Origin: Dimorphilus gyrociliatus
Lineage: Eukaryota; Animalia; Annelida
Reading direction: 5' to 3'
Length of the DNA stretch: 64,000 nucleotides
Assembly (NCBI GenBank): GCA_904063045.1
Contig: CAJFCJ010000012.1
Span: 310,001 to 374,000 of the forward strand
The translations under genes and the position numbers were made by a program. Within the stretch, counting starts at the first letter, position 1, and each line of letters starts with the position of its first letter. Positions 20,420 to 50,626 of this stretch are shown piece by piece. The notes under the pieces were generated by a model that did no database searches, was not told where the DNA came from, and saw nothing but the letters and a program-made list of their open reading frames with translations.

Positions 20420-20833
20420 TCAAATTGTACTATCAAAACCAGGATTCGTTATCCCTTTACTAGCATGTCTTCTATATTTGCCATAAAACTTATCTCCATC
20501 AGCCTCTTCCAACTCAATTTTCTTTCTTTCTTTTATCCTATATTTACAATAACTCGTCATGCAGCATCCCATGCTTAATAATGTTAATATTCCACCAATA
20601 ATTAAATAAATTAATCCAACTTTTGTGTCTTCGTCTTCTGAAGAAATAATAAATAAAACAGCTCCAATAATGAGTAATATTAAGGCAGGTAAGATAAATT
20701 GTAGACTCCCTATAGGTAAGTTGTATAAGCACGATTTTAAGATAGATCTTTCGGTTATCGGTTTAACTTTGGGTATTCCTCTTCTTGGTCCTTCTTCCAA
20801 CCTCAGATCAAATGTTTGTGATAATCTATTCAT
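20420..20833 (-). CDS. Small (137 aa) two-transmembrane protein, family unassigned
   Basis: Single ATG-initiated ORF. Two hydrophobic segments (FILPALILLIIGAVLFII; VGLIYLIIGGILTLLSMGCC) joined by a short acidic loop, juxtamembrane Cys cluster followed by a basic stretch, C-terminus NPGFDSTI. Confidence 0.7.
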   Translation of the reverse strand: MNRLSQTFDLRLEEGPRRGIPKVKPITERSILKSCLYNLPIGSLQFILPALILLIIGAVLFIISSEDEDTKVGLIYLIIGGILTLLSMGCCMTSYCKYRIKERKKIELEEADGDKFYGKYRRHASKGITNPGFDSTI

Positions 20834-26055: not shown

Positions 26056-29000
26056 ATGAATCAATTGATTGGAGTAATAAAAAAATTTTCACCGGTTGTT
26101 TCTTTAAACGAGGAAAAATTTGAAGAATTTTCAGGATTACTAAAAGAAAATGACATCACAACAAAATGGTCCTTAAAAGAGATAGAAGAATATGTTAATA
26201 CATTAAAAATTGAATTTTGCAATGATAAATGTCCCGCAATTAACACAGTCGGTGAAAGGGCGATAAAAGAGAGTTTTGAAATTTTTTCGAATCAAGTATA
26301 CAGGTTTGTAAAAGAAGTTTACTCTTAAGCCATAGTAAATTTATATTTCTTAAATAGCTACTATGCTCTTAAAAGTGGAGAAGATGAAGAATGTTTCTTT
26401 GTTTATGAAAAATTTTTTGATTTGATGTTCACTGCAATGGAAGGAAATTATATATCATCAGGGAATGAGTCCTGCTTTGACAAAATATTTTACCAAGTTC
26501 CCGGAGTTATACGTTTTACTAAAGTCAGTAAAAGCGTTATTCCGTTAAGAATAATATTGAATATTCTATTATACAGTATATATACTGTATATATATATAT
26601 ATATATATATATGATTTTAATAGAATATGAACGAAAATCACGTAAAGAGATTCATTAAAAGTTTAACTAGAAAATTTGAGCCACGACCTCAAGAAACTGA
26701 TGAGAGCAAATGGAAAAAAACAATAAAACGTTGGCCTAGTGAAATTATTTATCATCTTAAGTAAGTCACTTGAAAATTAGATTGAATGATGGCTGAATCT
26801 AAATTTGTATTGTAAACTTTTCTATTCAAGAAAAGAAGGCCTTCTTCAGTCAAGGAAAGAAATAATTATATATATCAATTTCTGGCTTGAATTAAGTCAG
26901 CAGTATAAAGGTTCTTCGAGTGATAATCTTATGATTTATGTGTGTCATGAAATGCTTTCGTTTGCTGCATCAATGGTTAGAGATATGGGAGGTTCTACTT
27001 TATTTGAGGTAAAAACTATTCAAAATTATTCACTTACCATTTATATAATATAAATTATAATTTCATTGAAGGAAGGTTCCACCGACGATGTTGAAAATTT
27101 GCTGCGTACTTACCATACAATTTTCTTCATGGAGGATTTTCCTCGAAATGAATGTGCAGTTGACGCTTGGAGAGACATTATTGTCGAAAGTCTTCAAGTA
27201 GCTATAAAGTGAGTATCAAGCACATAAAATTTGTTCCAGATTTTATTAGTGCCTCTTTTTTTCTGATAGAGATAATAACAAACTGACAGCTATTACTTAT
27301 GATTTTACTTCAAAGGTGTTGTTTTTTGGTAATGATCACGAAACACCCAGATCACTTTCAGATTTAGCAAAAGCCTTGTGTAAAAAGTATATGGAAATAG
27401 ACGTGAGTTAAAAAATAGACATTCAAAGAGTTCATTAAAAAAGTTTTCTTAACATTTTAGTTTGAATCTGTAGGAATGAAGAGCCATTTGGATATCTTCA
27501 TTGAAGAAGTAAAAATGATGAAAGAAGATGAACATGTCTATAGACAATTTGAACATAAAGAGGAAATATTTTTAAATCATTTGGTTCCAAAGTTTCAGTC
27601 AGTATTGCCCTTATACATCAAACGCGTAAAGAAATGTAATGGGTGTACACTTTCAGGGATAATGTAGATAAATTAAAAGAGTTACTTGTCGTAATCATAA
27701 AGAATCCATTGTGGAGAATTGCTTGTGAATACTTTGAAGGTGCAAATGACAAAAAAAAATTAGTGAATTTAAAGAAGAATCCTGAAATCTTCAATTTAAT
27801 GTTCAGTACCATGGACAATCCAGATATACCTTATAATACCGATACACTAGATGCTTTTAAACGTATAGGATATACATTATATGACATAATGGAGTAAGTT
27901 ATTGTAAGAACTTTGTTTACATATAAAACACGAATAAAACTTGAACAGAAAACAAAAAGTTTTCAAGAAAATGACCAGTCTAGTTTACGATGTCATTGAA
28001 AGTGCGTTCAAATATACTAAACATCCTATTCATAGTGCGATATGGCGGTTTTCTATAGCAGTTGATTGGAAGGTAAGAAATGATTATAATATTAAAACTA
28101 CCATTAGTAATTTCTATATTCTGTGTTGGATATAAAAAGGATGAATTACCAAGGTTTAATAATATACTTGTGAGAATTAAATCGATATTGGAAAAGGATC
28201 AAAACATAGTAAAGAAATTCGACATTCTTGTTGAAGTAGTGGATTTTTTCTTTCAAAAATTTAGCTATGTCTATACGTAAGATGGATAAGATGTTCTTTC
28301 GCAATTCTTTACCTGATTTAATTGTCTTTTGCAGAAATGATAAAAGAGTATTGGAATTAAAAGATAACATGGCAGATCTTTACAACTACTGTTACACTTT
28401 ACCATGGACGATAGATGAGGACGATGAAAGACTTCGAGATTCAGACATTTCAGATGAAGAATCTCTAACACTAGCCGGCTACTTTCTTTTCGTCGCTACA
28501 AAATATTTTTATATTCCAGTAAGAGCAATTACATAAAACTCAATATGTTTTAAGTTTGCATTAAACAGAATAACAACATTACCGAGCTAGTAATACCTAT
28601 TGTTCAAACTGCCAAAAATCTACGGAAACAGGAAGATAATGATCTGTTACAGGTGATCAGAATAACTTCTTCAATTATAATATTTACTGTAAAAATATTT
28701 CTTTTATCAGGGACAAGCCGATAAACTATTAAAAGAATTAACAGACACGGCAGACATTCTTGGTGATGATACAGGAAAAGAAATAATCGATGAATTCCTC
28801 CAAACAGAAGATAATACTTTATTAAGTAAAGTTTAATCCATCGAAAATTTATATAGGAAGTTAACAGTATATTTCTTTTTAATAATAGCAAAAGTAATTC
28901 TTATGTATCCCCAATTTACCGATTACATCCATGAAAAACTACCAACAATTTTGGAAATTTCAAAAAGAGGAAATTTAGGGATTGAGATGAATTTTTTAAG

Positions 29001-31221
29001 TTTGCTCAATCAGGTTGCCTCAAAAAATCCTCAAGTATTTAATCAGGATACTTTTGACTATCTCATTGATCAACTGGAGGGGACAAAAGTGACTCAATGC
29101 TATTTAATCTTTCAATCCCTGACTACAAAACAGAATCAGCTGTTCCAAAAGCACGACAAACGATTTGCAGAATTAGTGCAAAATGACAGTTCAGGTTTGT
29201 CATACTGCAATATTTTACCTGAAATAGCAAATTCTCTGGAAAAAGCACAGTACTTTACAAAAGTTCTCTGGGAAAAACTTCAAAGCGAAAGTGGAATTAA
29301 CCGTGCAACGGTAATATATGCCTTACGAAACATGGCTCTTAGGTTCAAAGAACCTGTATTAGTTTATAAAAGCCATCTCACAAAAATGAAAGACGACGTT
29401 CAAATAAAAGACTCGGTAACTGCACTTCTTGATACTTTGGAAGGAAGGTCATTAGAAACTGTCGCAATAGACGTGGAGGAACAGAGAGAAGATATTGATA
29501 ATTTAGATTCCAGAGTTACGAATAATGAAGATAAAATTGAAAATCTTGATAATGATGTCAGAGAAACTAAAGAAGACGTCGCCAATGTTAAACAAGATGT
29601 CAAAGAAACTAAGGAACGCATTGATCAAATTGAATATACAATCAAAGGACTCGATGAAAGAGTTGAAGAACTCAGTCATATGACTCTTTCACATGCTCCC
29701 GCTTGGACTCGTCATGTTTCCGAATTAATGAATGATCAAACCGATCACGATTGGAGACTCTTAGCTATGAAACTCAATTATACAAACGACGATATACGAA
29801 ATTGGGCTACTCAACCAGATCCTTGTCTATCGATGTTTGATGAATGGTTTGCTACTCACAAAACAAGAGAAGCTACAAACGCCATTTTAACTAATCTGAA
29901 AGAAATGAACAGATTAGACGCTGCTGAAATTGTGGAAAGTGCACTTGCAAATGTGAAAGATGTTGTTCAAGATGACGAAGATGAAGAGTTTGAGAAACCA
30001 GAAGTGTTTCTCAGCTATCAATGGGGACATCAACAAGAAGTGAAACTTCTGCGTAAACACTTGGAGATGGCCGGATTCAAGGCATGGATGGACATTGGCC
30101 AAATGGGTGGAGGTGACAAATTATACGCCAAAATCGATGATGGTGTTCGTTCAGCCAAAGTGATTATCAGTTGTGTAAGTGAGAAATATGCAAAATCCGC
30201 AAATTGCTGTAGAGAAGTTAACTTGTCAACAAATCTTGGAAAACCAATGATACCAATACTCATGGAACAATTATCGTGGCCTCCTGCAGGTCCGATGGGA
30301 CCAATCATGTCTGAATATTTGTATATTAGGTTCTTCAAGTCTGGTGGAATGGAAAAAGGCGACTCTGTATTTTGGTTGCCAGCAAAATTTCAAGAACTTC
30401 TCATGCAAGTTCGATACTTCGTCGTACCAGATATGAAACTCATTACGAATGATTCTCCTTATAAAGGATGGATGAATCCACCGGAAGAAGAAATCATCAT
30501 TCCGAAACGAGAACAAAAGGCCATTGAATCAAGCAATGGGAAATCGGAAGAGAACACGGAACAAGAAGTTTCGCCAGATGTCTTTATATCTTATCAATGG
30601 GGAAAACAACCACAAATTAAACGTCTATATAAAAAGCTTAGTGAAATGGGCTATTACTGTTGGTTAGATATCATGCAGATGGGAGGAGGAGATTCTCTTT
30701 TTGATAAAATTGATAAGGGAATCAGAGGAGCAAAAGTGATAATATCATGTGTTACTCCAAAGTATGCATTGAGTGCGAATTGTCGAAGAGAAGTTTCATT
30801 ATCAGGAGCATTGAGTAAGCCAATTGTTCCTTTATTATTAGAAGACATGAAATGGCCACCAGAAGGACCAATGTCGATGACATTTACGGAGCTTTTATAC
30901 ATTGGATTTCACAGAAAGAAAGACGATAAGTTGTGGGAGGGTGATGAATTTAATCAATTAATTTCAAAAATTGACCTGAATGCATCAGGATGTCGAATGA
31001 TTTCGGAGGCAGCGGAGACTAATGAAAGTAGTAAAAAAGCTGAAGATAATGAAGAGGCCGCTCGTAAAAGAAAATTGGAAGAGGAAAATAAGCAAAAAGA
31101 GTTGGAGAAGGAAAATGCGAAAAGAATTGAAGAAGAAAGAAGAAAGGAGGCTGAAGAAATGAAAGAAAAAAATACTGATCAGTCACCAAAAAAGAAGTCA
31201 TCGTTATGTGTTTTATTGTAG
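26056..31221 (+). CDS. Array copy 1: helical N-terminal region - coiled coil - Death - TIR - TIR - charged tail - CaaX (CVLL); 14 exons, 1449 aa
   Basis: Exons traced with consistent phases: 26056-26303, 26358-26523, 26624-26760, 26831-27008, 27072-27208, 27270-27402, 27461-27597, 27657-27893, 27949-28072, 28140-28276, 28335-28518, 28569-28652, 28711-28825, 28889-31221 (total 4350 nt). Death domain ~29701-29946 (DWRLLAMKLNY...W...AT...L..MNRLDAA). TIR1 from 30004 (VFLSYQW...SANCCRE), TIR2 from 30580 (VFISYQW...SANCRRE). Confidence 0.88.
26589..26612. repeat. (AT)n microsatellite in intron 2 of array copy 1
   Basis: Read directly from the sequence. Confidence 0.9.
29485..30993 (+). repeat. 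1,509-bp near-identical coding repeat, copy 1 of 4 (coiled coil-Death-TIR-TIR)
   Basis: Constant offsets of +7769, +13611 and +19465 to the other copies. Sense and antisense translations are essentially identical; only about 6 variable sites were seen by eye. Confidence 0.97.
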
Positions 31222-31545
31222 TTAGAAAACTTTTATGAAAAGAATTTTAATTTTCATAGTGCGATTTTCGTTAATGTTTTATAATTAATAGAAAAGAGAA
31301 ATATGCGATTATTAAATTTAATTAATCAAATATAGAAATATGATTTTATGAATATTTGAAATATTTGTGCGAGAAACGCTGGAAATGAAGTAATTGAGGT
31401 TGAAAATGATTTTGATTTGAAAACTACCATTGATGAATAAATGGTTTGTTGGTCACAATAGTAGCGAGTGGGCATGATCACTAATGATCGTCCTTGACCA
31501 GTATAGCTGGAAGAAAGATATCTTCATTTTGTAGATGAGATAGTT

Positions 31546-31904
31546 TTTTAATGAAAATGTAGATAAGATATTTCATAGATATGTACTGATATCGATTATG
31601 TTACTGTTTGTTTAAATAATTATATACAGTATATACTATCTTTGTTTTTTAACTTCCTGGTGAACATTTTGAATTAATATGAAAAAGGAATTTTTATTTT
31701 TTAATCTTCTGCTAATTTTTTTGAGATAAATGTTTAATGAAAATGTAGATAAGATATTTCATAGATATGTACTGATATTGACTATGTTACTTTTTGTTTA
31801 CATAGTTATATACAGTATATACTATCTTTACTTTTTAACTTCCTGGTGAACATTTTGAATTAGTATGAAAAAGAATTTTTATTTTTGAGTGTTCTGCTAA
31901 TTTT
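31546..31904. repeat. Two-unit tandem direct repeat, period ~186 bp, in the copy 1-copy 2 spacer
   Basis: ATGAAAATGTAGATAAGATATTTCATAGATATGTACTGATA... starts at 31551 and 31737. Both units share AACTTCCTGGTGAACATTTTGAATT and TTCTGCTAATTTT, with scattered substitutions. Confidence 0.9.
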
Positions 31905-33645
31905 ATGAGTAGAGTGAATTCTGTACTTGAGTAATGTTTATAATTGATTGCAATATAAGCAAAAGTGTGAAATTGATTGAATTGTTTGTTCAATTATTAA
32001 GAAAACGCAGAAAATTCTAATTTTTATTATTTATACACTTCGTATTGTTAAATTTCTTAGTAATATTGAAAAAAGCTATCAATGTTTAAGAATTATATGA
32101 AATGTTTATTTTGCGGTTACGTATTGTGTGTAATTAATGAATGTACTTACAAATTTTATAATTAGTTTTTGCCCCAACATGTAACAGTTTTATAGAGGTA
32201 ACTGTTTTATTTATTGATACATAACAGAGAATTGTTCTAATTGATATGTATTCTTTTATTACTTTCGTTTAATATTTTCCACTCCTTTAGTTGACATAGT
32301 TTGAAAGGCATCTAAGTTTATGTAATTATTGTTGATAGCTAAACATAAATATAACTAATTTTGTTAAAGAAAATGATAAATATCTAAAAAAAAATGTTGA
32401 TAATTATTCTTCTAACTATAGTATAAAAATATATTGGACTATTTTATTCAATTGGTATCAAAGTTCCTACTGTGTGTTACTTTATACAATTTTCAATATA
32501 TTACTTTGGTTTAAAGCCTATCTGGAATTGAATTGGGATTTGTTTTACTTTTCTTTTTGCTTGAGGACTTCGAATGATTCAGAGTCATTAGAAACAAGCT
32601 TTGAAAAGAAAAACCGCCAGACTAGTGAATTTGTTTGGCTGACTTAGAGATTTTAAAAATTACAAGATAAGCTTAATTTTCTCAATAGGTTAGAGTTTTT
32701 GATAAGGTTTCTTTAAATTTGTTAATTGACTCTGTATTGATACAAATCTTACTGGTGAGTGTTTATGGAAAATATTGATTTGTGTTGATTTATTCCTCTA
32801 AGGACTACATGAAAAATTTATTGACGAAATCTAGTGTAGAATATAATATATTAGTCATTTGCAAGAGATTCAGTTATTGAATGCTAAAACCTTATTTTTA
32901 AGTTACCTTATTTTCCCACTATTTATTTGAATAGTGGCAGAAAGGCCTTTATGATCTGATTTCTGTACAATCCCTTTATTTGATGTTCAAATACTTTTCC
33001 TAAAATAGAGCAAACTATAAAAAGACATGTGGAAAATATTAAATACAAGTTAATAAGAGTGTTAAATTGAGTCCGTTGTCATTTATAATCAGGTAACCAG
33101 TTTAAGATTCAAAAAGATGGAGTTATAAAAAATTTATGTTATTTGTATTACAACTCTAAATATAAGATATAAACAATAAAATCAATTCTATAACATTTAT
33201 ACTGATATAAAATAGTAACCTACGTCTTAAACTATAAAATGAACAGTTTGATATTATCTCAAACAAATCTCCAAGTATATTTTGCGCAGCAATTGTTATT
33301 TCTGCTATGTAGGTTTAGGAAAAGTTTGTATAATTCTAAAAAAATGCTCTTGACTGCTTTAATTTAACATTTACATAGTTACATAGTTGTAATACCGATA
33401 CGTTAGTACTTAACATTGGTTAAGCATGTTTATAACGTATCAGGAATAAGAGTTTGTTCCTAACGCTCTTATACCATACTTATTTGTGTTCAAAGAAATG
33501 AAAACACTAAGCTGTTGATAGTTGTGAAAAAAGTGAATTTTAGCTTGGTGATAAAAAAAAATAATGTGATAAGACTCTTTTGCAATATTAATAACTCCAT
33601 GTAGATAAAACCAGTACTATTGATTCGTTTCGCACTTATTTATAA

Positions 33646-33692
33646 ATTGCTAGGTTACACTTGACGGTGTCAGTTCAGCAAATTTTTCCTTA
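33646..33692 (+). promoter_or_regulatory. Conserved upstream block of array copy 2 (X-box-like + TGACG + TCAGCA-AT-rich)
   Basis: ATTGCTAGGTTACACTTGACGGTGTCAGTTCAGCAAATTTTTCCTTA aligns with the block upstream of copy 3; ~100-145 bp before the ATG. Confidence 0.5.
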
Positions 33693-33790
33693 TTCTAGAA
33701 AATATTCTGTAGTTTATTATCAACTGCGTATTTTGGTAGAAGCCTTAGACAATAATAATTAATACCAGTCTACTCTTGTAGATTTTTGCT

Positions 33791-36700: not shown

Positions 36701-39065
36701 CGAAAGCTTAGAAGAGATACTAGATATCGCAGAAGAAAATGGAGATGTAGGAATGATCACTTTACAAACCTTATTGAATAAAATTGCCGACAATGATCCC
36801 AAACAAATAACAAAAAAAGTATTTGACTATGTCATGAGCATATTAGACACAAACTTTGGAACTGCATATTTCTTTTTCTTACAAAAACTGGCTCCAAAAA
36901 GACCTCAGTTGTTTGATAATTACCACACCAGAATCAATGATCTCATTAGACAAGGCGAACACGGTAATGTCTTTTTACAACTACTGCCGGACTTGTCCCG
37001 AACAAAAGAACTAGCTCAAACAAATGCCAAGCTGACATGGGAGATATGTCAAAAAAATGATCCAACTTACGCGATAAGTGCTTATTATACACTACGATCC
37101 ATTGCCCTACGATTTAAAGAGACTGTTGAGGAGTATAAACCTCAATTGGAAAAACTAAAAGACGACCCAAAATTACGAGATAGCATAATGTCAATTCTTG
37201 ACGTATTGGAAGGAAGGACGTTAGAAACTGTAGCAAATGATGTTGAAGAACAAAGAGAAGATATTGATAATTTAGATTCCAGAGTTACGAATAATGAAGA
37301 TAAAATTGAAAATCTTGATAATGATGTCAGAGAAACTAAAGAAGACGTCGCCAATGTTAAACAAGATGTCAAAGAAACTAAGGAACGCATTGATCAAATT
37401 GAATATACAATCAAAGGACTCGATGAAAGAGTTGAAGAACTCAGTCATATGACTCTTTCACATGCTCCCGCTTGGACTCGTCATGTTTCCGAATTAATGA
37501 ATGATCAAACCGATCACGATTGGAGACTCTTAGCTATGAAACTCAATTATACAAACGACGATATACGAAATTGGGCTACTCAACCAGATCCTTGTCTATC
37601 GATGTTTGATGAATGGTTTGCTACTCACAAAACAAGAGAAGCTACAAACGCCATTTTAACTAATCTGAAAGAAATGAACAGATTAGACGCTGCTGAAATT
37701 GTGGAAAGTGCACTTGCAAATGTGAAAGATGTTGTTCAAGATGACGAAGATGAAGAGTTTGAGAAACCAGAAGTGTTTCTCAGCTATCAATGGGGACATC
37801 AACAAGAAGTGAAACTTCTGCGTAAACACTTGGAGATGGCCGGATTCAAGGCATGGATGGACATTGGCCAAATGGGTGGAGGTGACAAATTATACGCCAA
37901 AATCGATGATGGTGTTCGTTCAGCCAAAGTGATTATCAGTTGTGTAAGTGAGAAATATGCAAAATCCGCAAATTGCTGTAGAGAAGTTAACTTGTCAACA
38001 AATCTTGGAAAACCAATGATACCAATACTCATGGAACAATTATCGTGGCCTCCTGCAGGTCCGATGGGACCAATCATGTCTGAATATTTGTATATTAGGT
38101 TCTTCAAGTCTGGTGGAATGGAAAAAGGCGACTCTGTATTTTGGTTGCCAGCAAAATTTCAGGAACTTCTCATGCAAGTTCGATACTTCGTCGTACCAGA
38201 TATGAAACTCATTACGAATGATTCTCCTTATAAAGGATGGATGAATCCACCGGAAGAAGAAATCATCATTCCGAAACGAGAACAAAAGGCCATTGAATCA
38301 AGCAATGGGAAATCGGAAGAGAACACGGAACAAGAAGTTTCGCCAGATGTCTTTATATCTTATCAATGGGGAAAACAACCACAAATTAAACGTCTATATA
38401 AAAAGCTTAGTGAAATGGGCTATTACTGTTGGTTAGATATCATGCAGATGGGAGGAGGAGATTCTCTTTTTGATAAAATTGATAAGGGAATCAGAGGAGC
38501 AAAAGTGATAATATCATGTGTTACTCCAAAGTATGCATTGAGTGCGAATTGTCGAAGAGAAGTTTCATTATCAGGAGCATTGAGTAAGCCAATTGTTCCT
38601 TTATTATTAGAAGACATGAAATGGCCACCAGAAGGACCAATGTCGATGACATTTACGGAGCTTTTATACATTGGATTTCACAGAAAGAAAGACGATAAGT
38701 TGTGGGAGGGTGATGAATTTAATCAATTAATTTCAAAAATTGACCTGAATGCACCAGGATGTCGAATGATTTCGGAGGCAGCGGAAACGAAGGAAAGTAG
38801 TAAAACAGCAAAAGATGATGAAGAGGCCGCTCGTAAAAGAAAATTGGAAGAGGAAAATAAGCAAAAAGAGTTGGAGAAGGAAAATGCGAAAAGAATTGAA
38901 GAAGAAAGAAGGAAGGAGGCTGAAGAAAGGAAGAAACTGGCTGAAGAAAAACGGAAACAAGAGGAAGAATCAAAGAGAAAGCAAGAAGAAGATAGGAGTA
39001 AAAAAGATGAAAATAAGAGTGCTCAACCGCGAGCAAAGAAATCATCAATGTGTACCTTACTCTGA
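33791..39065 (+). CDS. Array copy 2: same architecture, ends CTLL
   Basis: ATG 33791. Same 13 intron positions and phases as copy 1, open frame across all junctions I traced. Terminal exon from ~36658 contains the identical core at 37254-38762. Confidence 0.88.
37254..38762 (+). repeat. 1,509-bp near-identical coding repeat, copy 2 of 4
   Basis: Offset +7769 from copy 1. Confidence 0.97.
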
Positions 39066-39464
39066 TAGAAATATTGAATTTATTAATACTGATTAATTTT
39101 GTAAAATTTTTGCTCATGATTGTACAATATGAAATAGAGATTTTTAATGATCAAATTTACCTAAGACACATAAAAGTTATCTGGTTTAACAGTACATATC
39201 TCTTATGCCGTATCTTTTTTTCTGATAATAATCCAAAGATTTCAGAGCCACCTTCGAATTATTATCTTTTTTATAATGATTGTTTTTGGCCATATGTTTT
39301 GGCCTTAATATTACAACTCATATAGGTGCCCTTCCATTGGACTACCGCTTTTTATGTCCTACTTTCGTAAGTAGTCTCGGTTAATAATCTAATATATTCT
39401 TATACCGATTTCTGTTTAGCAAATAATATATGAAGCCATTGATTATATCTTTGTTTCTCTATTC

Positions 39465-39515
39465 GTTGCCAAGTTACAATTGACGTTCGTCAACTCAGCA
39501 GAATATTTTTCCTTA
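39465..39515 (+). promoter_or_regulatory. Conserved upstream block of array copy 3
   Basis: GTTGCCAAGTTACAATTGACGTTCGTCAACTCAGCAGAATATTTTTCCTTA; ~75-125 bp before the ATG. Confidence 0.5.
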
Positions 39516-39588
39516 GACCACTAAAAAGTTCAATTTTTGGAAGTAAGCAGCCAAAGACAAATCGTTTTGGGTGAATAGCCGATAAAGT

Positions 39589-42500
39589 ATGGACAAGGCT
39601 ATAAAACTACTTAGGCAATATTCCCCGTTTGGTGAAATAGAGGAGGGTGCACTGTCAGACGTCAGAGAAATTTTTTCGTCAAGTGCTCCAAAAGAATGTA
39701 CTATTCCTGAGCTAATTATATTTACGAAGTATTTTCGAGAGGAATTATTAAAACAGCCATTACCTGTTTACAATTCAAATGGTGAATCGGCTTTCCGTGA
39801 ATTCGGCCAATATTTAAAATATAGGATCAACGAGTAAGCGTTATTAGAGAATATTTCATAATATTACTAATAATATATTAAACACTTTTATTAATCAGAA
39901 TTCTTTATTCTTGCAGAATGTGTTTTCTAATAACTGCACAACTAAATGTTTGAATCATTAACTATATTTACTTTTCTTTTCCAGTCAATATAATCGAGAC
40001 GACAAACTTCCAATAGTAAAACCATTGTATGATGAGTTTATTGAAACTATACTAAAGGTTTACGAAGAGGATTGCGTAACTTCAGGAAATTATAGTTCCC
40101 TTAGGGATCTAATATATGGGAGCAACTTTAAAACATATGCTAAGGTTAGAAAATATATAAATATTAGTTTATTCTTCATTTGAACAAGAGTTATAAATTC
40201 TTTTATAGGAGAACTTTACAGAAACTCACATGAAAAGGCTTATTCAAGCATTCAAAAGAGAATTTGAGCCAAAAAAAGAGACTAATGTTCGATCATGGAC
40301 ATCAAATATGCCTTATCCAGCTGGTGAAATATTGGATATGATAAAGTAAAAATAAATATTTATTGAAATATCTAAAGAATACATTTAATATTATTTATAT
40401 TTAGTCCTAAAGTCTGCGAATCAAATAAAAAGGAAATGATTGAGTTACTGCTATTTTGGTGTGAAAATTCAATGAAGTATAAAGGTGACGATGACGGCAC
40501 CAGGAATAAAATAGCTTTGGTCAGCAAAATTCTTTCGGTGTTTGAGTCACCATTGAAAGTCTCAAGGAAAGAAAACAATAATAGATGTATGCTTTTTATG
40601 GTTTGTTATAAATTACTATCAATTTTATATAGTTCTAAAGAAAAGTTATTCAGGATTTAGATATGAAAATTTATGACTATGCGTTTGGAAAGTTTCGTGA
40701 AATTATGATGTCAGAAGATTATGGGGCTAACAGATATGTCAATGATATTATTTCATTCTTAGTGAAGGAGTCGTTAGCGATTGAACTAGAGTAAGCAAAT
40801 AACTGTTTTAATTGATAAAAGATTTAAAAAATATAACATATTAATAGACATACTACCAACAATGAACTCTTAGCAAAAGCCTTTGCATTTTGCATGGATA
40901 TAAGAAAAAATGCAAAAAAAGATTCCAAATATCTTTCAAAGAAAATGATTGAAAAGATGAATGAAAGATATCTTACTATTGATGTAAGTTGAAATATAAT
41001 TCATTTAATAATGTTAATTATTTCCTTTAATTTTCTCAAAAATTAATAGTTTAAGGCAGTTGGTATGAAGGATCATTTTGATCAATTTTTAGACGAATTA
41101 GCCAGTATACGTACAAGAGAAGAATGCTCTAGTCTAGTTGAATTAAGGAAAAAGCATTTTGAAGAAAAGTTTTTTTCCATCATTCAGTAAGATAATATAA
41201 ATTAGTAATATAAATGATAAGAATTCATATTTAATTTGGATTTTCAGAAATGATATTGAACAGTTGAAACGTTTTTTAAAAGTAATTCTTGAAAATCCAT
41301 GGAGAGAAGTACTAAATACGTTTTATGTGGAAAAATTAGAAAAAAAGAAGCTTATAAACTTTAAAAAGAATGCCGAAATATTTTCATATATTTTTGATGT
41401 TGCTTATAATGCGAAATTAGATTATGACGAGAGAATATTGGATTGCTATTGGAAAATTGGTTTATCACTTTACGAAGCATTAGAGTTTGTTTTAAAACAC
41501 ATTTAATAGCCATGGTATTAAGATTTTTTCTCTTTACATAAACTTCTTAGCAAGCAAAACTGTATTGCAAAATTCAAGAAAGATATTGTAAAAGTTATCG
41601 ATAAAGCTTTCGATTTCTCTAAGCATCACCTACACAGTGCTGTATTCAGAATGACCTATGGAATTGAATGGAAGGTATAACCAGTGACACATTTTACGGC
41701 AATGTATATTATTACATTCAGTGTACTAATAATTCGTTAAATTTTTAACAAGAATGAATTAGCGACATTTCATAGTATTCTTCGTAAACTGAACGTTATT
41801 ATAGCGAGAAAAGAAGACCTAAGTCATCCATCAGATAGAATATGCGAAACTGCAAAATTAGTTATAGAAAGAATCTCATATGGAGTCGGGTATGAAAGCC
41901 GATGTCATAATTTTTTTTAATATTTACAAGCTATTGAACTTGAACAGCAAAAATAAGAAAATACTTGAGATAAAGGATACTTTGGGTGAACTTTTTAACG
42001 CTTGTTACGACCTACCATGGTCCATTGATGATGACGATCCTAGAATCGCAAAAAAATTGATTGTTAATGATGATGATAAGCGAACTCTGGCAGGACACAT
42101 TCTGAAGACTTCGTTAAAAACGATCTATCAGACAGTACTTATTCAATAAAGACAGACGAAATATTAGATAACATATGAAATTTTTCAGAATAACGACTAT
42201 AGTGAACTTTTATTTCCGGTTATCGAAGTAATAAAGAAATTAAAAAGACAAGACGATGACCAAGAGTTACAGGTTTAATAGTTGATATTTTAGCTCGGCG
42301 ACACTGAATTGTCTTTTCAAAACAGAACGCAGCAACTGACTTGATAAAAAATTTAACAGATCAGATGGAACTATTAGGGGATGAAGGTGGTATAGAGATT
42401 ATAGATGAATTTCTTGAAGAAAGAAATGGTGCTCTTTTAGGTTACAAACTTAATTATTCTAAATAAAATTAATATAATAAGGAAGATGATCATTTATAGG

Positions 42501-45009
42501 AAAGGTTGCTGAAATGTATCCAAACTGCTCTGACTATATCCATGAGAAGATCCCTGAAATTTTGGAAATAACTCAGGAAGAAGAAAATCTGGCCATGCAC
42601 TATTTCGTTCAATTAATGGGAAAAGTCATTCAACATCATCCTGAACAAATCACGGAAGACATAGTTGATTTCTTAATGACATATTTAGACGGACATCTAG
42701 CGGCGTCAACTTTTCAAATCTTTCAAAAAATCGCAACGACAAACTCACGCCTCTTAGAAAAACACCACACAACGATTGGTGACTTCATTCAAAATCACGA
42801 ATACGGCGGTATGTTTTGTAATTTAACAGCTGATCTTTCAAATTCCGAGCAGACGGCCAGTTATTTTACTGACATTATATGGAAAAGACATATTGCGACT
42901 GGTGAAACACCTTATACACCATCTCTTCTATATTCTTTTCGTTCAATGGCTCACAAATACAAAGAACCAGTTGCCAAATACCGACAAGAATTTGAAAAAA
43001 TGAGAGAAGGAAAACATAAAGATGCTATTTTAGCAATATTTGATGTACTAGACGGAAGGACGTTAGAAAATGTAGCAAATGATGTTGAAGAACAAAGAGA
43101 AGATATTGATAATTTAGATTCCAGAGTTACGAATAATGAAGATAAAATTGAAAATCTTGATAATGATGTCAGAGAAACTAAAGAAGACGTCGCCAATGTT
43201 AAACAAGATGTCAAAGAAACTAAGGAACGCATTGATCAAATTGAATATACAATCAAAGGACTCGATGAAAGAGTTGAAGAACTCAGTCATATGACTCTTT
43301 CACATGCTCCCGCTTGGACTCGTCATGTTTCCGAATTAATGAATGATCAAACCGATCACGATTGGAGACTCTTAGCTATGAAACTCAACTATACAAACGA
43401 CGATATACGAAATTGGGCTACTCAACCAGATCCTTGTCTATCGATGTTTGATGAATGGTTTGCTACTCACAAAACAAGAGAAGCTACAAACGCCATTTTA
43501 ACTAATCTGAAAGAAATGAACAGATTAGACGCTGCTGAAATTGTGGAAAGTGCACTTGCAAATGTGAAAGATGTTGTTCAAGATGACGAAGATGAAGAGT
43601 TTGAGAAACCAGAAGTGTTTCTCAGCTATCAATGGGGACATCAACAAGAAGTGAAACTTCTGCGTAAACACTTGGAGATGGCCGGATTCAAGGCATGGAT
43701 GGACATTGGCCAAATGGGTGGAGGTGACAAATTATACGCCAAAATCGATGATGGTGTTCGTTCAGCCAAAGTGATTATCAGTTGTGTAAGTGAGAAATAT
43801 GCAAAATCCGCAAATTGCTGTAGAGAAGTTAACTTGTCAACAAATCTTGGAAAACCAATGATACCAATACTCATGGAACAATTATCGTGGCCTCCTGCAG
43901 GTCCGATGGGACCAATCATGTCTGAATATTTGTATATTAGGTTCTTCAAGTCTGGTGGAATGGAAAAAGGCGACTCTGTATTTTGGTTGCCAGCAAAATT
44001 TCAGGAACTTCTCATGCAAGTTCGATACTTCGTCGTACCAGATATGAAACTCATTACGAATGATTCTCCTTATAAAGGATGGATGAATCCACCGGAAGAA
44101 GAAATCATCATTCCGAAACGAGAACAAAAGGCCATTGAATCAAGCAATGGGAAATCGGAAGAGAACACGGAACAAGAAGTTTCGCCAGATGTCTTTATAT
44201 CTTATCAATGGGGAAAACAACCACAAATTAAACGTCTATATAAAAAGCTTAGTGAAATGGGCTATTACTGTTGGTTAGATATCATGCAGATGGGAGGAGG
44301 AGATTCTCTTTTTGATAAAATTGATAAGGGAATCAGAGGAGCAAAAGTGATAATATCATGTGTTACTCCAAAGTATGCATTGAGTGCGAATTGTCGAAGA
44401 GAAGTTTCATTATCAGGAGCATTGAGTAAGCCAATTGTTCCTTTATTATTAGAAGACATGAAATGGCCACCAGAAGGACCAATGTCGATGACATTTACGG
44501 AGCTTTTATACATTGGATTTCACAGAAAGAAAGACGATAAGTTGTGGGAGGGTGATGAATTTAATCAATTAATTTCAAAAATTGACCTGAATGCACCAGG
44601 ATGTCGAATGATTTCGGAGGCAGCGGAGACTAATGAAAGTAATAAAAAAGCTAAAGATGATGAAGAGGCGGCTCGTAAAAGAAAATTGGAAGAGGAAAAT
44701 AAGCAAAAAGAGTTGGAGAAGGAAAATGCGAAAAGAATTGAAGAAGAAAGAAGGAAGGAGGCTGAAGAAATGAAGAAACTGGCTGAAGAAAAACGGAAAC
44801 AAGAAGAGGAAATCAGAATGCGAGAAGAAGAAATTAGAAAGCGGGAAGAAGCAATAATGAAGCGAGAACTAGAATTGAAAAAGGTAGAAGAAGATAATAG
44901 GCGAAAAAATGAGGAGAAACAGAGGCGAGAAACAGAGTTGAGAAGGAGAAATGAAGAGGAAAATCGTGATAATCCTCCGAAAAAGTCATCTACCTGTTCA
45001 ATTTTATAA
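39589..45009 (+). CDS. Array copy 3: same architecture, longest charged tail, ends CSIL
   Basis: ATG 39589. Same exon structure with open frame. Core at 43096-44604. Confidence 0.88.
43096..44604 (+). repeat. 1,509-bp near-identical coding repeat, copy 3 of 4
   Basis: Offset +13611 from copy 1. Confidence 0.97.
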
Positions 45010-45541
45010 ATATTTAATAATTTTAAAAAAGTATATTTTTTAAAGTGCAAATGGTGCTGTATATATGGATAAAAGTTTATATTCTAGTAAATACTATTGT
45101 CGACATGAAATGAATTAAAGGTTTTTTTTGTGAAGTTATTGTTGTGGCTGAATGAAAATCTTGAAATACAAATTTTTTTGAGTTGTGTTACTTTAAATAA
45201 TATAATTTCTTTAGATACAAATTTTTCATAAAAACGAGTTATAAGCTTTGCTAAAACGATTGTTTTTTTGTTCAGTTACACATGTTTTGTATATTTTTTG
45301 ATATGAAGCATGATCGTTTTGCATATAGCACAGCTATCTTTATTACTTAATTGATTTATTATTACAGCGAATTGTTTATTTTCTACGAAAGTGCTTTAGG
45401 AATTGATTATTTCTATGTTATGCTTGTTGGCAAGGTGAAACTAACTAATAACAGCGCAGCTCAAATTTTCTATATAGATTGCTTAACCTCATATTTCATT
45501 TTGAAATTGAAAATTCGTAAACAAAACACCTTGATTTTCGA

Positions 45542-48500
45542 ATGATGGATGTTTTTATAAAAGAAGTTGATAAATTTTCTCCTTTTAGTGGAATAACTGA
45601 TGATAAACTCTCCAAGTTTCGTGAAATTTGTCGGAAAGATTGTCCCGAAACAGCTTCAGTGGACGATTGCTTAAAATTTATAAAATTTTTTCGGAAGGAG
45701 TTGATGAAGAAACCATTACCGATCAACAATGATTCGGCGTCATCGGCCTTTGAAGAATGCGGCGTAATTGTCCGGCGTTTAGGTTCCAAGTAGGTTCATT
45801 TAATCGTTAAAAGCGATTTGCTGAGAATAAAGTGATTTTAATTTTATGGTCATCCAGTATAAAAGATAATGAAATGGTAAATCAGTTATTTGATGAGTGT
45901 GTGGAAACTATCATTAAAGTCTATGAAGAAGATTGCGTAACATCTGATAATTACAGTTCGCTAAGGTCATTAATACATGTAAAAAAATTTACCGAATACG
46001 CCGAGGTTTATGTTTAATTGTGCTAATTCTGATCTTATAAATAATTAAAAATCTATACAACAGACGAATACAACAGATATTCAACTGAAAAGACTTATTA
46101 ATGCTTTTAAAAGAGAGTTTGATCCAAAAGGTGAGAATGATCTGAAACAATGGGCCGGAAATATGCCTTACCCAGCTGGTGAATTATTGGAGAGTTTCAG
46201 GTAAGATTGATAAAATTTATTGGTTTATACTTAGTGCATTATTAGCCATATTATATATTTTTAGTTCTAAGGCTGTTAAAGAAAGTAAAAAAGAATTTAT
46301 AGAAATATTCATATTTTGGGCTGAAACTGCATTAAAGTACAAAGAAAAAGATAGTGATCACGTATTTTATTTATATTTGATTGCTAAAGTGCGCTCAATT
46401 TTTGAACGTCCATTGGAGAAAATCTCTAAAAAGGAGAAAGCAGAGATTCTTTTCATCGTTTGTATAAAATTACTATAAAATTTATAAAAAATCAATAATT
46501 CACGCTATTTAGAATTTGGACACAGAAGTTTACGATTATGCCTTCTCCAAATGTCAGAAAATCATGTTTTCTCCCGATTTTCTTTCAAATAGATATCCTA
46601 AGGATGTTATTGAGCTTCTAATCACAACTTCTCTGACCTATGCAATAAAGTAAAGTAGTTCACTAGTAATTTTTTCGTCTTTAGAAAGAACTAAGTTTTT
46701 CTTTTACAGAAATAATCCTACGAATAAATTATTAGCAAAAGCTTATGACTTTTCTTATACAATGTATAAAAATGATGAGAGAGTCGTCAAACGCCTTGTT
46801 GATAGCTTATTTAAATACCTTAATGGAAACTTTCTAACAATTGATGTAGGTTTTATAGTATAACTTTTAGAGAATAGTGCGTCTTAATTCCTAATGTATA
46901 TTGCTTTCTAAAAATATTTAGTTTGTGGAGGTTGGTATGAAAAGCCACTATGATCAATTTTTGGATGAGATAGCTAACATTAGAACAGGACCAGAAGCTA
47001 ACCAAGTGGTTGATTTGAGAAAAAAGCATTTTCAAGAAAAGTATTTTTATCTTATTCAGTAAGATTCTTGAATGTCATTGTAATAGATGTTATAAAAAGT
47101 TTCATTCAATTTTTAGACAAGATAAAGAAAATTCAAAAAAATTTTTAAAAGTGTTACTTGAAAATCCATGGGATAAAATAATAAGAACATTTTTCGTTGA
47201 CGCTATGAATAAGAACTTAATAAATTTCCATCAAAATCCCGATATATTTTCATATACTTTTGATTTGGCTTATAAGACTAAAATCTACTATGATGAAAGA
47301 TCACGTAGTGGCTATTGGACAATTGGTTCAACAATCTGTGAAGTGTTACAGTTGCGTTGAATATTAACAAAACGCAGTCTATATTCTAATATATTTTCTA
47401 TTGTATTTAGAAACCAGGGACTCATCAGCAAACTAAAAAAAGATATTTTTCGAGCTATTGAAGCGACTTTTGATTTTTCTAAACATCAACTACATGATTT
47501 CATTGTTGGATTTATACAAACTTTAAAATGGAAGGTCCAAACATGATAATTCTCAATAGTTGAAAATTATGATGTATCTTTTTTATACAGGGCGAAATAT
47601 CAACATTCAAGAGTATTCTTGTTAAGCTTAAAATAATCATAGACAAAAAAGAAAATATATGCGATGCTGAAGATAAGATCTGTAGGGTTACAAAAGCAGT
47701 CTTTGAACAAGTCAATATTGATTTAGCGTATGTAGAATAGAATAAATGAATGTTTTTCTTTATTAATTCACCAAAATTTTATAGAAAAAATAGGAAACTT
47801 CTTCAGATAAAGGATGCTTTGGGTGAGCTCTTTAATGCTTGCTACAACAATTCCTGGTCTATTTCAAATGATGATTCGAGGATTGCAAAACAGATATGTA
47901 TCGGTGATGATGAAAAGAGAACACTAGCCGGACAAATCCTAAAAGTTACAATGAACTCTATTTATCAATATGTACTTTCAGTGTATTAAATAAGAAGAGA
48001 AATCTGATAATGTATAATTAAATTTTTTCAGAATTTTGAATTCACTGCTCTATTTGAGCCAACAATCGAAACACTGAGACTTTTAAGAAAGCGATATGAA
48101 GATAAAGAACTACAGGTTCAACAAAATTTTTCTTTTCATTACTCTAGCAATTACAGTCGTTTATTTAAAAATACAGAAAGCAGCATCAGAAACAATATTA
48201 GGTTTATCTGATAAAATAGAGTTGATAGGAATTGATACAGGACACGACATCATTGATCAATTCATTGAAGAGAGAAGTATTCGAATCTTTGGTACAAATA
48301 CTAAATATTATATAACGCTGCAAAATACTGTAAAAAAATAACTAATATATTTACAGGAAAAGTTACCGAATTGTATCCTAGTTGTGCAGATTATATTCAC
48401 AAACACCTAGAGGAAATTCAAGATATAGCTGAGGACGAAGGTCAAATAGGACTTAATAATTTTGTACAACTAGTAACCAAAATTGGACAACATAACCCAA

Positions 48501-50626
48501 AAGAAATAACGCAGAAAATGGTTGACTTTTTAATCGACTATGTCGACGGACCATTTGCTTTTACAGCAATTCAACAAATAATACTACATCGAGTAGAGAC
48601 CTTAGAAAATTATCATGATAACTTTGCCAATGCCATAAAGTTTTCCCAATATGGTGGACTTTATATACCAGATAATATTATATTAGCCCTATGTACTACT
48701 GAAGAGAGAGCAAAATTCTATAGTAAAGCTTTATGGGAAAAGCATCTCCAGAATCAGGACACACCATATACCAAAGGAATTCTATACGCCCTTCAGCAAA
48801 TTGCTCAAAAGTACAAAAATGCAGTTGTCACTTACCAAAAAGAAATACAGAATATGAAAGACGGGAAGTATCAAAGTGCAGCTGCTGATGTCATCAATGT
48901 TTTAGAAGGAAGAACTCTGGCGAATGTAGCAAATGATGTTGAAGAACAAAGAGAAGATATTGATAATTTAGATTCCAGAGTTACGAATAATGAAGATAAA
49001 ATTGAAAATCTTGATAATGATGTCAGAGAAACTAAAGAAGACGTCGCCAATGTTAAACAAGATGTCAAAGAAACTAAGGAACGCATTGATCAAATTGAAT
49101 ATACAATCAAAGGACTCGATGAAAGAGTTGAAGAACTCAGTCATATGACTCTTTCACATGCTCCCGCTTGGACTCGTCATGTTTCCGAATTAATGAATGA
49201 TCAAACCGATCACGATTGGAGACTCTTAGCTATGAAACTCAACTATACAAACGACGATATACGAAATTGGGCTACTCAACCAGATCCTTGTCTATCGATG
49301 TTTGATGAATGGTTTGCTACTCACAAAACAAGAGAAGCTACAAACGCCATTTTAACTAATCTGAAAGAAATGAACAGATTAGACGCTGCTGAAATTGTGG
49401 AAAGTGCACTTGCAAATGTGAAAGATGTTGTTCAAGATGACGAAGATGAAGAGTTTGAGAAACCAGAAGTGTTTCTCAGCTATCAATGGGGACATCAACA
49501 AGAAGTGAAACTTCTGCGTAAACACTTGGAGATGGCCGGATTCAAGGCATGGATGGACATTGGCCAAATGGGTGGAGGTGACAAATTATACGCCAAAATC
49601 GATGATGGTGTTCGTTCAGCCAAAGTGATTATCAGTTGTGTAAGTGAGAAATATGCAAAATCCGCAAATTGCTGTAGAGAAGTTAACTTGTCAACAAATC
49701 TTGGAAAACCAATGATACCAATACTCATGGAACAATTATCGTGGCCTCCTGCAGGTCCGATGGGACCAATCATGTCTGAATATTTGTATATTAGGTTCTT
49801 CAAGTCTGGTGGAATGGAAAAAGGCGACTCTGTATTTTGGTTGCCAGCAAAATTTCAAGAACTTCTCATGCAAGTTCGATACTTCGTCGTACCAGATATG
49901 AAACTCATTACGAATGATTCTCCTTATAAAGGATGGATGAATCCACCGGAAGAAGAAATCATCATTCCGAAACGAGAACAAAAGGCCATTGAATCAAGCA
50001 ATGGGAAATCGGAAGAGAACACGGAACAAGAAGTTTCGCCAGATGTCTTTATATCTTATCAATGGGGAAAACAACCACAAATTAAACGTCTATATAAAAA
50101 GCTTAGTGAAATGGGCTATTACTGTTGGTTAGATATCATGCAGATGGGAGGAGGAGATTCTCTTTTTGATAAAATTGATAAGGGAATCAGAGGAGCAAAA
50201 GTGATAATATCATGTGTTACTCCAAAGTATGCATTGAGTGCGAATTGTCGAAGAGAAGTTTCATTATCAGGAGCATTGAGTAAGCCAATTGTTCCTTTAT
50301 TATTAGAAGACATGAAATGGCCACCAGAAGGACCAATGTCGATGACATTTACGGAACTTTTATACATTGGATTTCACAGAAAGAAAGACGATAAGTTGTG
50401 GGAGGGTGACGAATTCAATCAATTAATTTCAAAAATTGACCTGAATGCACCAGGATGTAGAACACTGTCAACATCAAGCAGAGTAAAAGATCAGTCGACA
50501 ACTGTTTCGTTAAATAAGAAAAGTGTTCAGAAAAATTCCGAGAAAAGAGATGACACAAACAGTTTGTTTGAATACAAGTACCAAAATTCTAATAGCAATA
50601 CATCAGGGGCATGCCAGATTTTATAA
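45542..50626 (+). CDS. Array copy 4: same architecture, unrelated short tail, ends CQIL
   Basis: ATG 45542. Same exon structure with open frame. The track's start at 48371 (TTG) is internal to the last exon. Core at 48950-50458. Confidence 0.87.
48950..50458 (+). repeat. 1,509-bp near-identical coding repeat, copy 4 of 4
   Basis: Offset +19465 from copy 1. Diverges immediately after ...GCACCAGGATGT. Confidence 0.97.

Follow-up and report, generated by a model that had tools for sequence, protein, structure and literature searches.

The 64,000-nucleotide stretch of the Dimorphilus gyrociliatus genome analyzed here (GenBank assembly GCA_904063045.1, contig CAJFCJ010000012.1, positions 310,001 to 374,000 of the forward strand; hereafter the window) contains a tandem array of four paralogous genes, g1 to g4. 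Their products have one order of parts in common: a HEAT-like solenoid of ~865 amino acids, a coiled coil of 70 amino acids, a Death domain, two TIR_2 domains, a tail and a C-terminal CaaL motif. The array is interpreted as four paralogs, of which g2 and g3 are expressed, of an old invertebrate protein family, in which the C-terminal core has been overwritten by gene conversion and the products serve as membrane-anchored signaling proteins in the manner proposed below; the probability of this reading is put at roughly 55%. New to this analysis are the domain-restricted conversion, the family-wide polybasic CaaX end and glutamate positions of both TIR domains, the SARM1-like character of these domains, and the homology of part of the solenoid to the Melted/VEPH1 proteins.

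The two ends of the four genes have strikingly different histories. A core of 505 amino acids, running from DVEEQRED to ISKIDLNA, is 100% identical in g1 to g4, and among its 1515 nucleotides (nt) only nine sites vary, all of them synonymous third positions. The ~860 N-terminal codons of the same genes encode proteins that are 27–45% identical, with nonsynonymous divergence (dN) of 0.44–0.75; synonymous divergence (dS) is 0.003–0.027 in the core versus 1.5–3.3 (saturated) in the N-terminal parts, a difference of ~100-fold. In the N-terminal parts, synonymous sites, four-fold sites and introns have either reached saturation or can no longer be aligned. However fast the proteins changed, similarity at synonymous sites and in introns would have survived; the duplications must therefore be old and the identity of the core secondary. 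The change from one regime to the other is abrupt. At the 5' edge, DNA identity climbs from ~50% to 100% within ~60 nt at the first coiled-coil codons, with the edge of the tract no more than ~25 nt from the first of these codons and coinciding with the domain boundary. At the 3' edge, near-identity runs 160–196 nt into the tail among g1, g2 and g3, and in g4 it ends right at the end of the core.

Comparison with unlinked relatives points in the same direction. Other paralogs in the family have N-termini that are 25–28% identical and cores that are 71–84% identical. The unlinked Dimorphilus paralog DgyrCDS3196 lies at the same N-terminal distance from g1 as g4 does, and its core is 84% identical in amino acids and 79% in nucleotides. 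When the proximal 300 N-terminal residues are compared in a maximum-likelihood tree, g2 falls with the unlinked DgyrCDS3196/3184 (support 96/97) and g1 with DgyrCDS14397, and monophyly of the four array N-termini is rejected (approximately unbiased (AU) test, p=0.0025). The four cores, in a tree of their own, are identical. The N-termini of g1 to g4 evidently represent different ancient paralog lineages. Within the core, sites 308 (T,T,C,C) and 923 (A,G,G,A) fail the four-gamete test, and since all four haplotypes occur, the tract must be a mosaic of more than one event. By all these comparisons, the core has been homogenized by region-restricted, non-allelic gene conversion among the copies, acting repeatedly over 1.5–1.7 kb.

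Transcript data from two public runs bear on the same region. Contigs of the separately filed transcriptome run X2 end at precisely the point where each unique N-terminus gives way to the core; the core itself is covered by single contigs free of variants, with 0 differences in 1209 nt and a summed depth ~7-fold that of a unique N-terminal contig. A coral metatranscriptome (run X1) contains transcripts 95–99% identical to the array, including g3-specific exons, and this near-identity to g3 indicates that a close relative of D. gyrociliatus was present in the coral sample. The relative differs from g3 at 13 positions in 911 nt of core, 12 of them synonymous, and at 12 of the 13 sites g1 to g4 all have one letter in common. 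The X1 contigs extend at low depth over positions 39610–44402 of the window, and one of their spliced joints is the same as in g3 (40142/40207).

The conversion is explained most simply as a neutral, self-sustaining by-product: the slowly evolving core would stay similar enough to recombine, the N-termini would be too diverged for conversion, and the outcome would be several distinct input domains coupled to a single output module. Region-restricted gene conversion is known in clustered receptor genes, among them the protocadherin variable exons and plant NLR clusters. As in those clusters, one part of the tandem paralogs is homogenized while the recognition part diverges; unlike in them, the homogenized part is the intracellular coiled-coil, Death, TIR and TIR module, and it reaches 100% protein identity beside saturated N-termini. 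A signature of GC-biased conversion was sought and set aside, the GC content at third codon positions (GC3) being 0.30 in the core, 0.27–0.30 in the N-terminus and 0.26 in an unconverted paralog, differences too small to use; core GC3 is so little raised that it gives no hint of strongly biased or of long, intense conversion.

The original prediction had seen in the invariant core a means for the paralogs to co-oligomerize. The invariance is real, but gene conversion explains it, and selection for co-oligomerization is not needed. Homogenization actively selected so that paralogs with different sensors co-assemble in one signaling oligomer is judged rather improbable. It would fit the tract edge that falls ~25 nt from the start of the coiled coil at a domain boundary, the fact that nine of nine residual core differences are synonymous, and the transcription of g2 and g3 in the same whole-animal library (observed directly), with the core at higher summed depth. 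However, a neutral process, in which conversion lasts only where the copies remain highly similar, would leave the same pattern; cores 71–96% identical serve other paralogs, both in Dimorphilus and elsewhere in the family; and core GC3 is hardly above that of the N-terminus or the unconverted paralog. A recent whole-gene duplication with explosive N-terminal evolution, or an artefact of assembly or polishing, is very improbable even though tandem near-identical segments of 1.5 kb are hard for assemblers and polishers: protein-level selection cannot produce the N-terminal saturation at synonymous, four-fold and intron sites, in the N-terminal tree the array genes are interspersed with unlinked paralogs and monophyly of the array is rejected, the X2 contigs break at the core start and are variant-free over the core at their ~7-fold depth, and the residual differences, synonymous and mosaic throughout, are unlike those of collapsed or mis-polished repeats.

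The gene structures on which these comparisons build are well defined. The window is AT-rich (GC ~29%) and eukaryotic, and between 28.9 and 50.6 kb it contains four open reading frames of 751–831 amino acids on the plus strand, with a long identical stretch common to all. Paralog-versus-paralog tblastx places short conserved coding blocks, separated by gaps of ~55 nt, 5' of each long frame. Models guided by splice sites and homology, with spliced transcript contigs of run X2 as template, yield four co-oriented, intact genes, each with 14 coding exons, in which all introns are GT..AG. Transcript support for splicing covers g2 and g3. A 3738-nt spliced contig matches 13 of 13 coding introns of g2, and a 3234-nt contig resolves g3 into 15 exons and 14 GT..AG introns (13 coding and one in the 5' untranslated region (UTR)), reaching the long terminal exon. 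The structures of g1 and g4 rest on the models and the public annotation (product lengths from GCA_904063045.1, contig CAJFCJ010000012.1): the g1 model is 100% identical to DgyrCDS8667 across 1441 aligned residues and the g4 model to DgyrCDS8671 across 1421, the differences from annotation amounting to 4–6 residues at one or two splice choices. A search of the rest of the window for further family copies, fragments or pseudogenes found none. Models, transcripts and annotation thus bear out the four intact, co-oriented 14-exon genes of the original prediction, including the start coordinate and exon count, and the splicing of N-terminal exons to the terminal exon that it proposed is visible in the RNA contigs of g2 and g3.

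Domain searches and structure models agree on the anatomy of the products. In a Pfam scan, each of the four proteins gives a single Death match (E about 1e-11) and a pair of TIR_2 matches (E about 1e-41). Residues 1–880 of g1 are modeled by AlphaFold2, from a 44-sequence alignment, as an all-helical solenoid with a mean predicted local distance difference test score (pLDDT) of 87.8. The AlphaFold2 model of the core begins with a single 70-residue coiled-coil helix with hydrophobic residues at 3-4-7 spacing; next in order are a Death domain of six helices, TIR1 and TIR2 with a disordered linker of ~30 residues between them, and a helical tail rich in Lys and Glu. The two TIR domains are 50% identical to each other. 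The tail of g4 is rich in Ser, Thr and Asn where the others are rich in Lys and Glu. The proteins terminate in CVLL (g1), CTLL (g2), CSIL (g3) and CQIL (g4), that is, with Cys at −4, an aliphatic residue at −2 and a terminal Leu. Every anatomical item first predicted from the letters, namely the divergent helical N-terminus of ~870 amino acids, coiled coil, Death domain, TIR pair, tail and CaaL end, proved right. A terminal Leu in a CaaX motif directs geranylgeranylation by geranylgeranyltransferase I (GGTase-I). The consensus end of the family, KKKS(K/S)xC-a-a-L, fits this rule with a basic patch upstream, as in the anchors of K-Ras4B and Rho GTPases; unlike in those proteins, the predicted prenylation motif sits on a TIR signaling protein, and in g4 it has no basic patch.

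This architecture is old and conserved, to judge from its distribution, and is no peculiarity of the Dimorphilus array. A search with the g3 terminal exon (E≤1e-5) returned 163 proteins; the composition described here is that of the best 120 of the 163. Relatives among these matches come from molluscs, annelids, a nemertean, a flatworm, bdelloid rotifers, echinoderms, hemichordates and amphioxus, hence from at least eight phyla, and nearly all are named 'uncharacterized', with one sea-urchin entry named 'MyD88-like protein L1'. No vertebrate, arthropod, nematode or cnidarian members occur among the 120 matches listed. Residues 0–505 of the g1 core align end to end, almost without indels, to ~100 proteins of eight phyla at 45–84% identity. 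A 53-sequence alignment of the core from eight phyla has 61 invariant columns, and the motifs SYQWG, MGGGD, S-NC--E and WPP-G are invariant in both TIR domains. A CaaX end is present in 104 of the 120 listed homologs, typically as KKKS(K/S)xCxIL. The N-terminus measures ~800–890 amino acids in protostomes and ~505–556 in deuterostomes. Tandem paralogs on the same contig are common, with lineage-specific expansions in Haliotis, Branchiostoma, Antedon, Ptychodera, Lytechinus, rotifers and Dimorphilus. Two relatives carry extra domains, an LSM14-FDF-YjeF_N segment before the solenoid-Death-TIR-TIR order in P0168 (1571 amino acids) and a C-terminal UBX domain in P0153 (1180 amino acids); these are probably merged gene models, but could be real fusions.

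The array had been put forward as an undescribed system, which overstates the case, as the same collinear architecture occurs in at least eight animal phyla. [quoted passage not shown] The family probably belongs among these ecTIR-DC proteins (PMC6321704; PMC8662601). Locally duplicated immune-type families have been described in the D. gyrociliatus genome paper (bioRxiv 10.1101/2020.05.07.078311). Directly upstream of the unlinked paralog DgyrCDS3196 (L001:10001-15137) lie a 1598-amino-acid gene (L001:3476-8335, minus strand) with a weak NACHT and a faint LRR match and a 429-amino-acid LRR gene, a neighborhood that may form a small immune-type gene cluster.

The TIR domains are closest to those of SARM1 and of enzymatic TIR proteins. 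Searched against all sequences of the PDB with phmmer, TIR1 matches the SARM1 TIR domain first (E=3e-5), followed by bacterial TIR domains, Cat1 and AbTIR, and TIR2 matches AbTIR, SARM1 and bacterial TIR domains; no MyD88 or TLR TIR domain appears among the PDB sequence matches of either. Foldseek ranks human SARM1 and Caenorhabditis elegans TIR-1 first for the core model, then the SPARTA and AbTir TIR domains; HyTRR-2, TLR15 and MAL TIR domains are among its matches, and no MyD88 TIR domain is among the top 50. The Glu of the TIR1 motif CCREV aligns with SARM1 chain residue 86, which is E642 by the offset from full-length chains and is known as the catalytic residue from the title of PDB entry 7cm7. 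The equivalent Glu of TIR2 was placed through the alignment of TIR1 and TIR2, and both are invariant in the 53 sequences of eight phyla; in the annotated g1 product they are Glu1115 and Glu1307. The MyD88 signature comprises Box 1 FDAFICY, Box 2 RDVLPG and the beta-E motif CDYT (PMC7075850); these are absent here, and the equivalent stretches read VFLSYQWG and DIGQMGGGD. Among solved structures, the Death domain is nearest p75NTR (E=4e-4) and UNC5, whereas its match to MyD88 is weak (E=0.06). SAM domains give no Pfam hit in the full-length proteins, and the coiled coil and Death domain hold the position.

Three animal systems invite comparison. Like SARM1 and TIR-1, the family proteins combine a helical-repeat N-terminus and an oligomerization module with a following TIR_2-type TIR domain, and the Glu642 position is retained in both TIR domains. 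Unlike SARM1, they have a coiled coil and Death domain in place of SAM domains, two tandem TIR domains, a C-terminal CaaX motif and a solenoid of ~865 amino acids with no specific match to the SARM1 ARM domain; the four residues directly ahead of the Glu in SARM1 are missing, and catalysis is here a prediction. Like MyD88, they have a Death domain N-terminal to a TIR domain in a cytosolic protein, and one relative bears the name 'MyD88-like'; unlike MyD88, they are ~5 times larger, contain a solenoid, a coiled coil, a second TIR domain and a CaaX motif, lack the box motifs, and their domains are not closest to those of MyD88. Of the two analogies first drawn for the locus, that with MyD88 is the weaker where the TIR domains are concerned, and that with SARM1 the stronger. 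Drosophila Raw is a cyclic ADP-ribose (cADPR) hydrolase with two TIR domains, both of which are needed, and with essential glutamates (PMC13455253). It too is an animal protein with two glutamate-bearing TIR domains in a single chain; unlike the family proteins, it has dimerization domains and no Death domain, solenoid or CaaX motif, and no sequence relationship between them is seen.

The solenoid is in part homologous to a known adaptor domain. Foldseek against the PDB and Swiss-Prot models returns generic HEAT solenoids for the N-terminal model (SF3B1, CAND1, importins/karyopherins and MMS19) with template modeling (TM) scores of 0.2–0.3; no specific match to the SARM1 ARM domain was found in these sets, and a look-up in the ESM Atlas was likewise generic. 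A profile search with the N-terminus across 1.8 billion representatives (E≤1e-3) returned 850 proteins. Profile positions ~450–830 match the first ~360 residues of proteins of 750–1100 amino acids (E=1e-27 to 1e-34) that end in a PH domain and are named melted or VEPH1. Aligned by hhalign, the family N-terminal profile and a Melted/VEPH1 alignment match over 332 columns with a probability of 99.7% (E=1.6e-26), family residues ~498–844 corresponding to Melted/VEPH1 residues 25–356, the conserved armadillo-like domain. Foldseek independently places zebrafish VEPH1 on query residues 470–858. The proximal third of the solenoid (the last ~350 amino acids) is accordingly classed, on profile similarity, as homologous to the Melted/VEPH1 adaptor domain, the two being one-domain relatives and the array proteins not members of that group. 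A C-terminal membrane-targeting device, predicted in the array proteins, is a further point of likeness. However, Melted and VEPH1 end in a PH domain, for which Pfam gives no hit in the g1 to g4 proteins, and are without a coiled coil, Death or TIR domain. The VEPH1 domain mediates ALK5 binding and Melted binds TSC1 and FoxO at the membrane (PMC6734325), an analogy which suggests that the membrane-proximal third of the solenoid may be a protein-binding platform. VEPH1 has been reviewed as a gene without known paralog (PMC6734325), and its relationship to the solenoid appears not to have been noted before.

Other matches of the N-terminal profile were set aside. Matches of ~300 amino acids to profile positions 160–490, considered as a separate domain family, are unnamed fragments encoded on short contigs from metagenomes or rotifers, and in all likelihood incomplete gene calls. 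Giant HEAT proteins, with 10–11 repeated matches at profile positions ~560–785, were rejected as family members, this being generic HEAT-repeat similarity. These giants, the Ank-NACHT-HEAT array P0151 (Parachlamydia sp., 2515 amino acids) and the SIR2-nSTAND1-HEAT array P0181 (metagenome, 3076 amino acids), are STAND NTPases with HEAT 'sensor' arrays.

A mechanism can be proposed from these elements. The protein would be geranylgeranylated and held on the cytosolic face of a membrane. The coiled coil would keep it in a constitutive dimer or trimer, and since g1 to g4 do not differ in this segment, mixed oligomers of the four would be possible. The solenoid would bind a protein partner or ligand and restrain the C-terminal module until a trigger causes the Death and TIR domains to assemble into higher-order oligomers. 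The paired TIR domains would most probably be enzymes that consume NAD+ or produce a nucleotide signal, as in SARM1, and the Death domain would recruit Death-domain kinases or adaptors. Catalytic competence of the TIR domains is plausible on their sequence, though not assured; enzymatic TIR domains are the option tentatively preferred, at somewhat short of even odds, and TIR domains as part of a purely scaffolding adaptor are a more doubtful one, the remaining probability going to some other function. An immune role is suggested by the tandem expansions, the NACHT-LRR neighbor of one paralog and the pattern of loss across the family. Immune sensing, NADase activity and positive selection are put forward as hypotheses. 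The original prediction that each N-terminus detects its own ligand or pathogen effector gained no direct support.

Several observations weigh against the reading of the array as converted, membrane-anchored signaling proteins. The evidence for core identity consists of the assembly and transcriptome contigs. A Glu at the catalytic position is necessary but not sufficient for NADase activity, and the SARM1 residues KDWVH directly before it face an alignment gap in TIR1, so that the pocket is not fully conserved. The packing of TIR1 against TIR2 is not reliably predicted, the core model having a predicted TM score (pTM) of 0.37. The Death domain appears nearest to p75NTR and UNC5, not to immune adaptors, and g4 has no polybasic stretch ahead of its CaaX motif. 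Melted and VEPH1 act in growth and TGF-beta signaling (PMC6734325), a role that points away from pathogen sensing. Whole-domain dN/dS of the N-terminus is 0.2–0.35, a value that at saturated dS carries little information on site-wise selection and gives no evidence of diversifying selection. No enzymatic, localization, interaction or infection results on any family member were found in the literature.

The best placed of the functional alternatives, itself considered unlikely, gives the proteins no enzymatic activity and has them act in Toll-like receptor signaling as adaptors that sort or bridge, akin to MyD88 and TIRAP. The conserved glutamates would then be structural, the prenyl anchor would position the protein at the membrane, the TIR domains would bind receptor TIR domains, and the Death domain would nucleate a Myddosome-like complex. 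TLR adaptors are targeted to membranes by lipid binding or lipid modification. The order of Death and TIR domains is that of MyD88, the sea-urchin entry 'MyD88-like protein L1' carries the name, HyTRR-2, TLR15 and MAL TIR domains recur among the fold matches, and in arthropods MyD88 carries a C-terminal localization domain (PMC7075850). In contrast, the TIR sequences match only SARM1 and bacterial or plant enzymatic TIR domains rather than MyD88 or TLRs, the MyD88 signature boxes are missing, the Death domain is closer to p75NTR and UNC5 than to MyD88, and invariance of the Glu in both TIR domains across eight phyla would be unusual for pure scaffolds.

A non-immune role, in membrane-proximal growth, metabolic or injury signaling with the paralogs as equivalents of tissue- or stage-specific isoforms, is held to be less probable still. 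The homology of the proximal N-terminus to a domain that binds TSC1, FoxO and ALK5 (PMC6734325) would suit such a role, as would a Death domain nearest the neuronal receptors p75NTR and UNC5, N-terminal dN/dS below 0.4, and the fact that the best-known role of SARM1 is in axon degeneration (PMC13455253). However, repeated lineage-specific tandem expansions and the lack of members from vertebrates, arthropods and nematodes among the 120 matches listed are more typical of defense genes, and one paralog adjoins a NACHT-LRR gene.

The reading of the array as converted, membrane-anchored members of an old family has implications beyond Dimorphilus. Until recently SARM1 was the sole animal TIR protein recognized as an enzyme (2026 paper, PMC13455253). 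A family extending from rotifers to amphioxus, with two SARM1-like TIR domains, a Death domain and a lipid-anchor motif, offers a testable candidate for an enzymatic TIR system in animals. The array itself is a natural experiment, in which four anciently diverged input domains are joined to one output module identical at the protein level, and is suited to chimera-free tests of the role of the solenoid. Homology to Melted/VEPH1 offers a first way into the study of the N-terminus and provides VEPH1 with distant relatives, and the locus is a sharp, statistically supported case of domain-restricted concerted evolution. A bolder extension, speculative and improbable at present, is that the family comprises pan-invertebrate, membrane-tethered TIR enzymes, lost in vertebrates, arthropods and nematodes, with an exchangeable Melted/VEPH1-related solenoid as receptor of danger signals or of signals from pathogens, and that the Dimorphilus array, its common output module maintained by conversion beneath four different receptors, is a combinatorial, hetero-oligomeric immune receptor. 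If true, it would be an animal counterpart of the logic of plant TIR-NLRs and bacterial TIR effectors without a STAND NTPase.

Table 1. Coordinates of the four genes and their parts, numbered from the first letter of the window (aa, amino acids; CDS, coding sequence)
Feature	Start	End	Strand	Product or parts	Basis or remark
Gene g1 (DgyrCDS8667)	26056	31221	+	1445 aa in model, 1449 aa annotated; end CVLL 31207-31218	Homology/splice-site model
Melted/VEPH1-like part of g1	28067	29403	+		Equivalent of the g3 part
Core of g1	29470	30984	+	Coiled coil 29470-29679, Death 29707-29964, TIR1 30001-30420, TIR2 30577-30981	
Gene g2	33791	39065	+	1480 aa in model and annotation; end CTLL 39051-39062	13/13 coding introns in transcript contig
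Melted/VEPH1-like part of g2	35856	37172	+		Equivalent of the g3 part
Core of g2	37239	38753	+	Coiled coil, Death, TIR1, TIR2	
Gene g3	39200	45009	+	CDS from ATG 39589; 1513 aa in model and annotation; end CSIL 44995-45006	
5' UTR exon of g3		39366	+	Followed by intron 39367-39419	Spliced transcript contig
Melted/VEPH1-like part of g3	41669	43014	+	aa 502-849	
Core of g3	43081	44595	+	Coiled coil 43081-43290, Death 43318-43575, TIR1 43612-44031, TIR2 44188-44592	
Gene g4 (DgyrCDS8671)	45545	50626	+	1427 aa in model, 1421 aa annotated; end CQIL 50612-50623	
Melted/VEPH1-like part of g4	47529	48868	+		Equivalent of the g3 part
Core of g4	48935	50449	+		Identity to other copies stops directly after core

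No other immune-type genes are found among the annotated neighbors flanking the array within 10 kb. Upstream, the annotation has a 988-amino-acid product at 16056-18696 and a 137-amino-acid product at 20420-20833, both on the minus strand and without Pfam matches; downstream, an M20 peptidase lies at 56910-58383 on the plus strand. Between g2 and g3, the g3 transcript contig reaches back ~267 nt upstream of position 39200, as far as unique sequence at the 3' end of g2 (whose stop codon is at 39065; region 38933-39420), and spans the gap of 523 bp. Read-through or UTRs that overlap would account for this, as would a join made during assembly. Operons and trans-splicing have been excluded in D. 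gyrociliatus (bioRxiv 10.1101/2020.05.07.078311). In the 2.5-kb gap between g1 and g2, a transcript contig on the minus strand (32465-33790) contains a 224-nt CT..AC intron at ~33000-33223, equivalent to GT..AG on that strand. Spliced on the minus strand, the sequence has no open reading frame of at least 40 amino acids and is probably a non-coding RNA, divergently transcribed 5' of g2; in the assembly graph the contig is merged with the g2 transcript.

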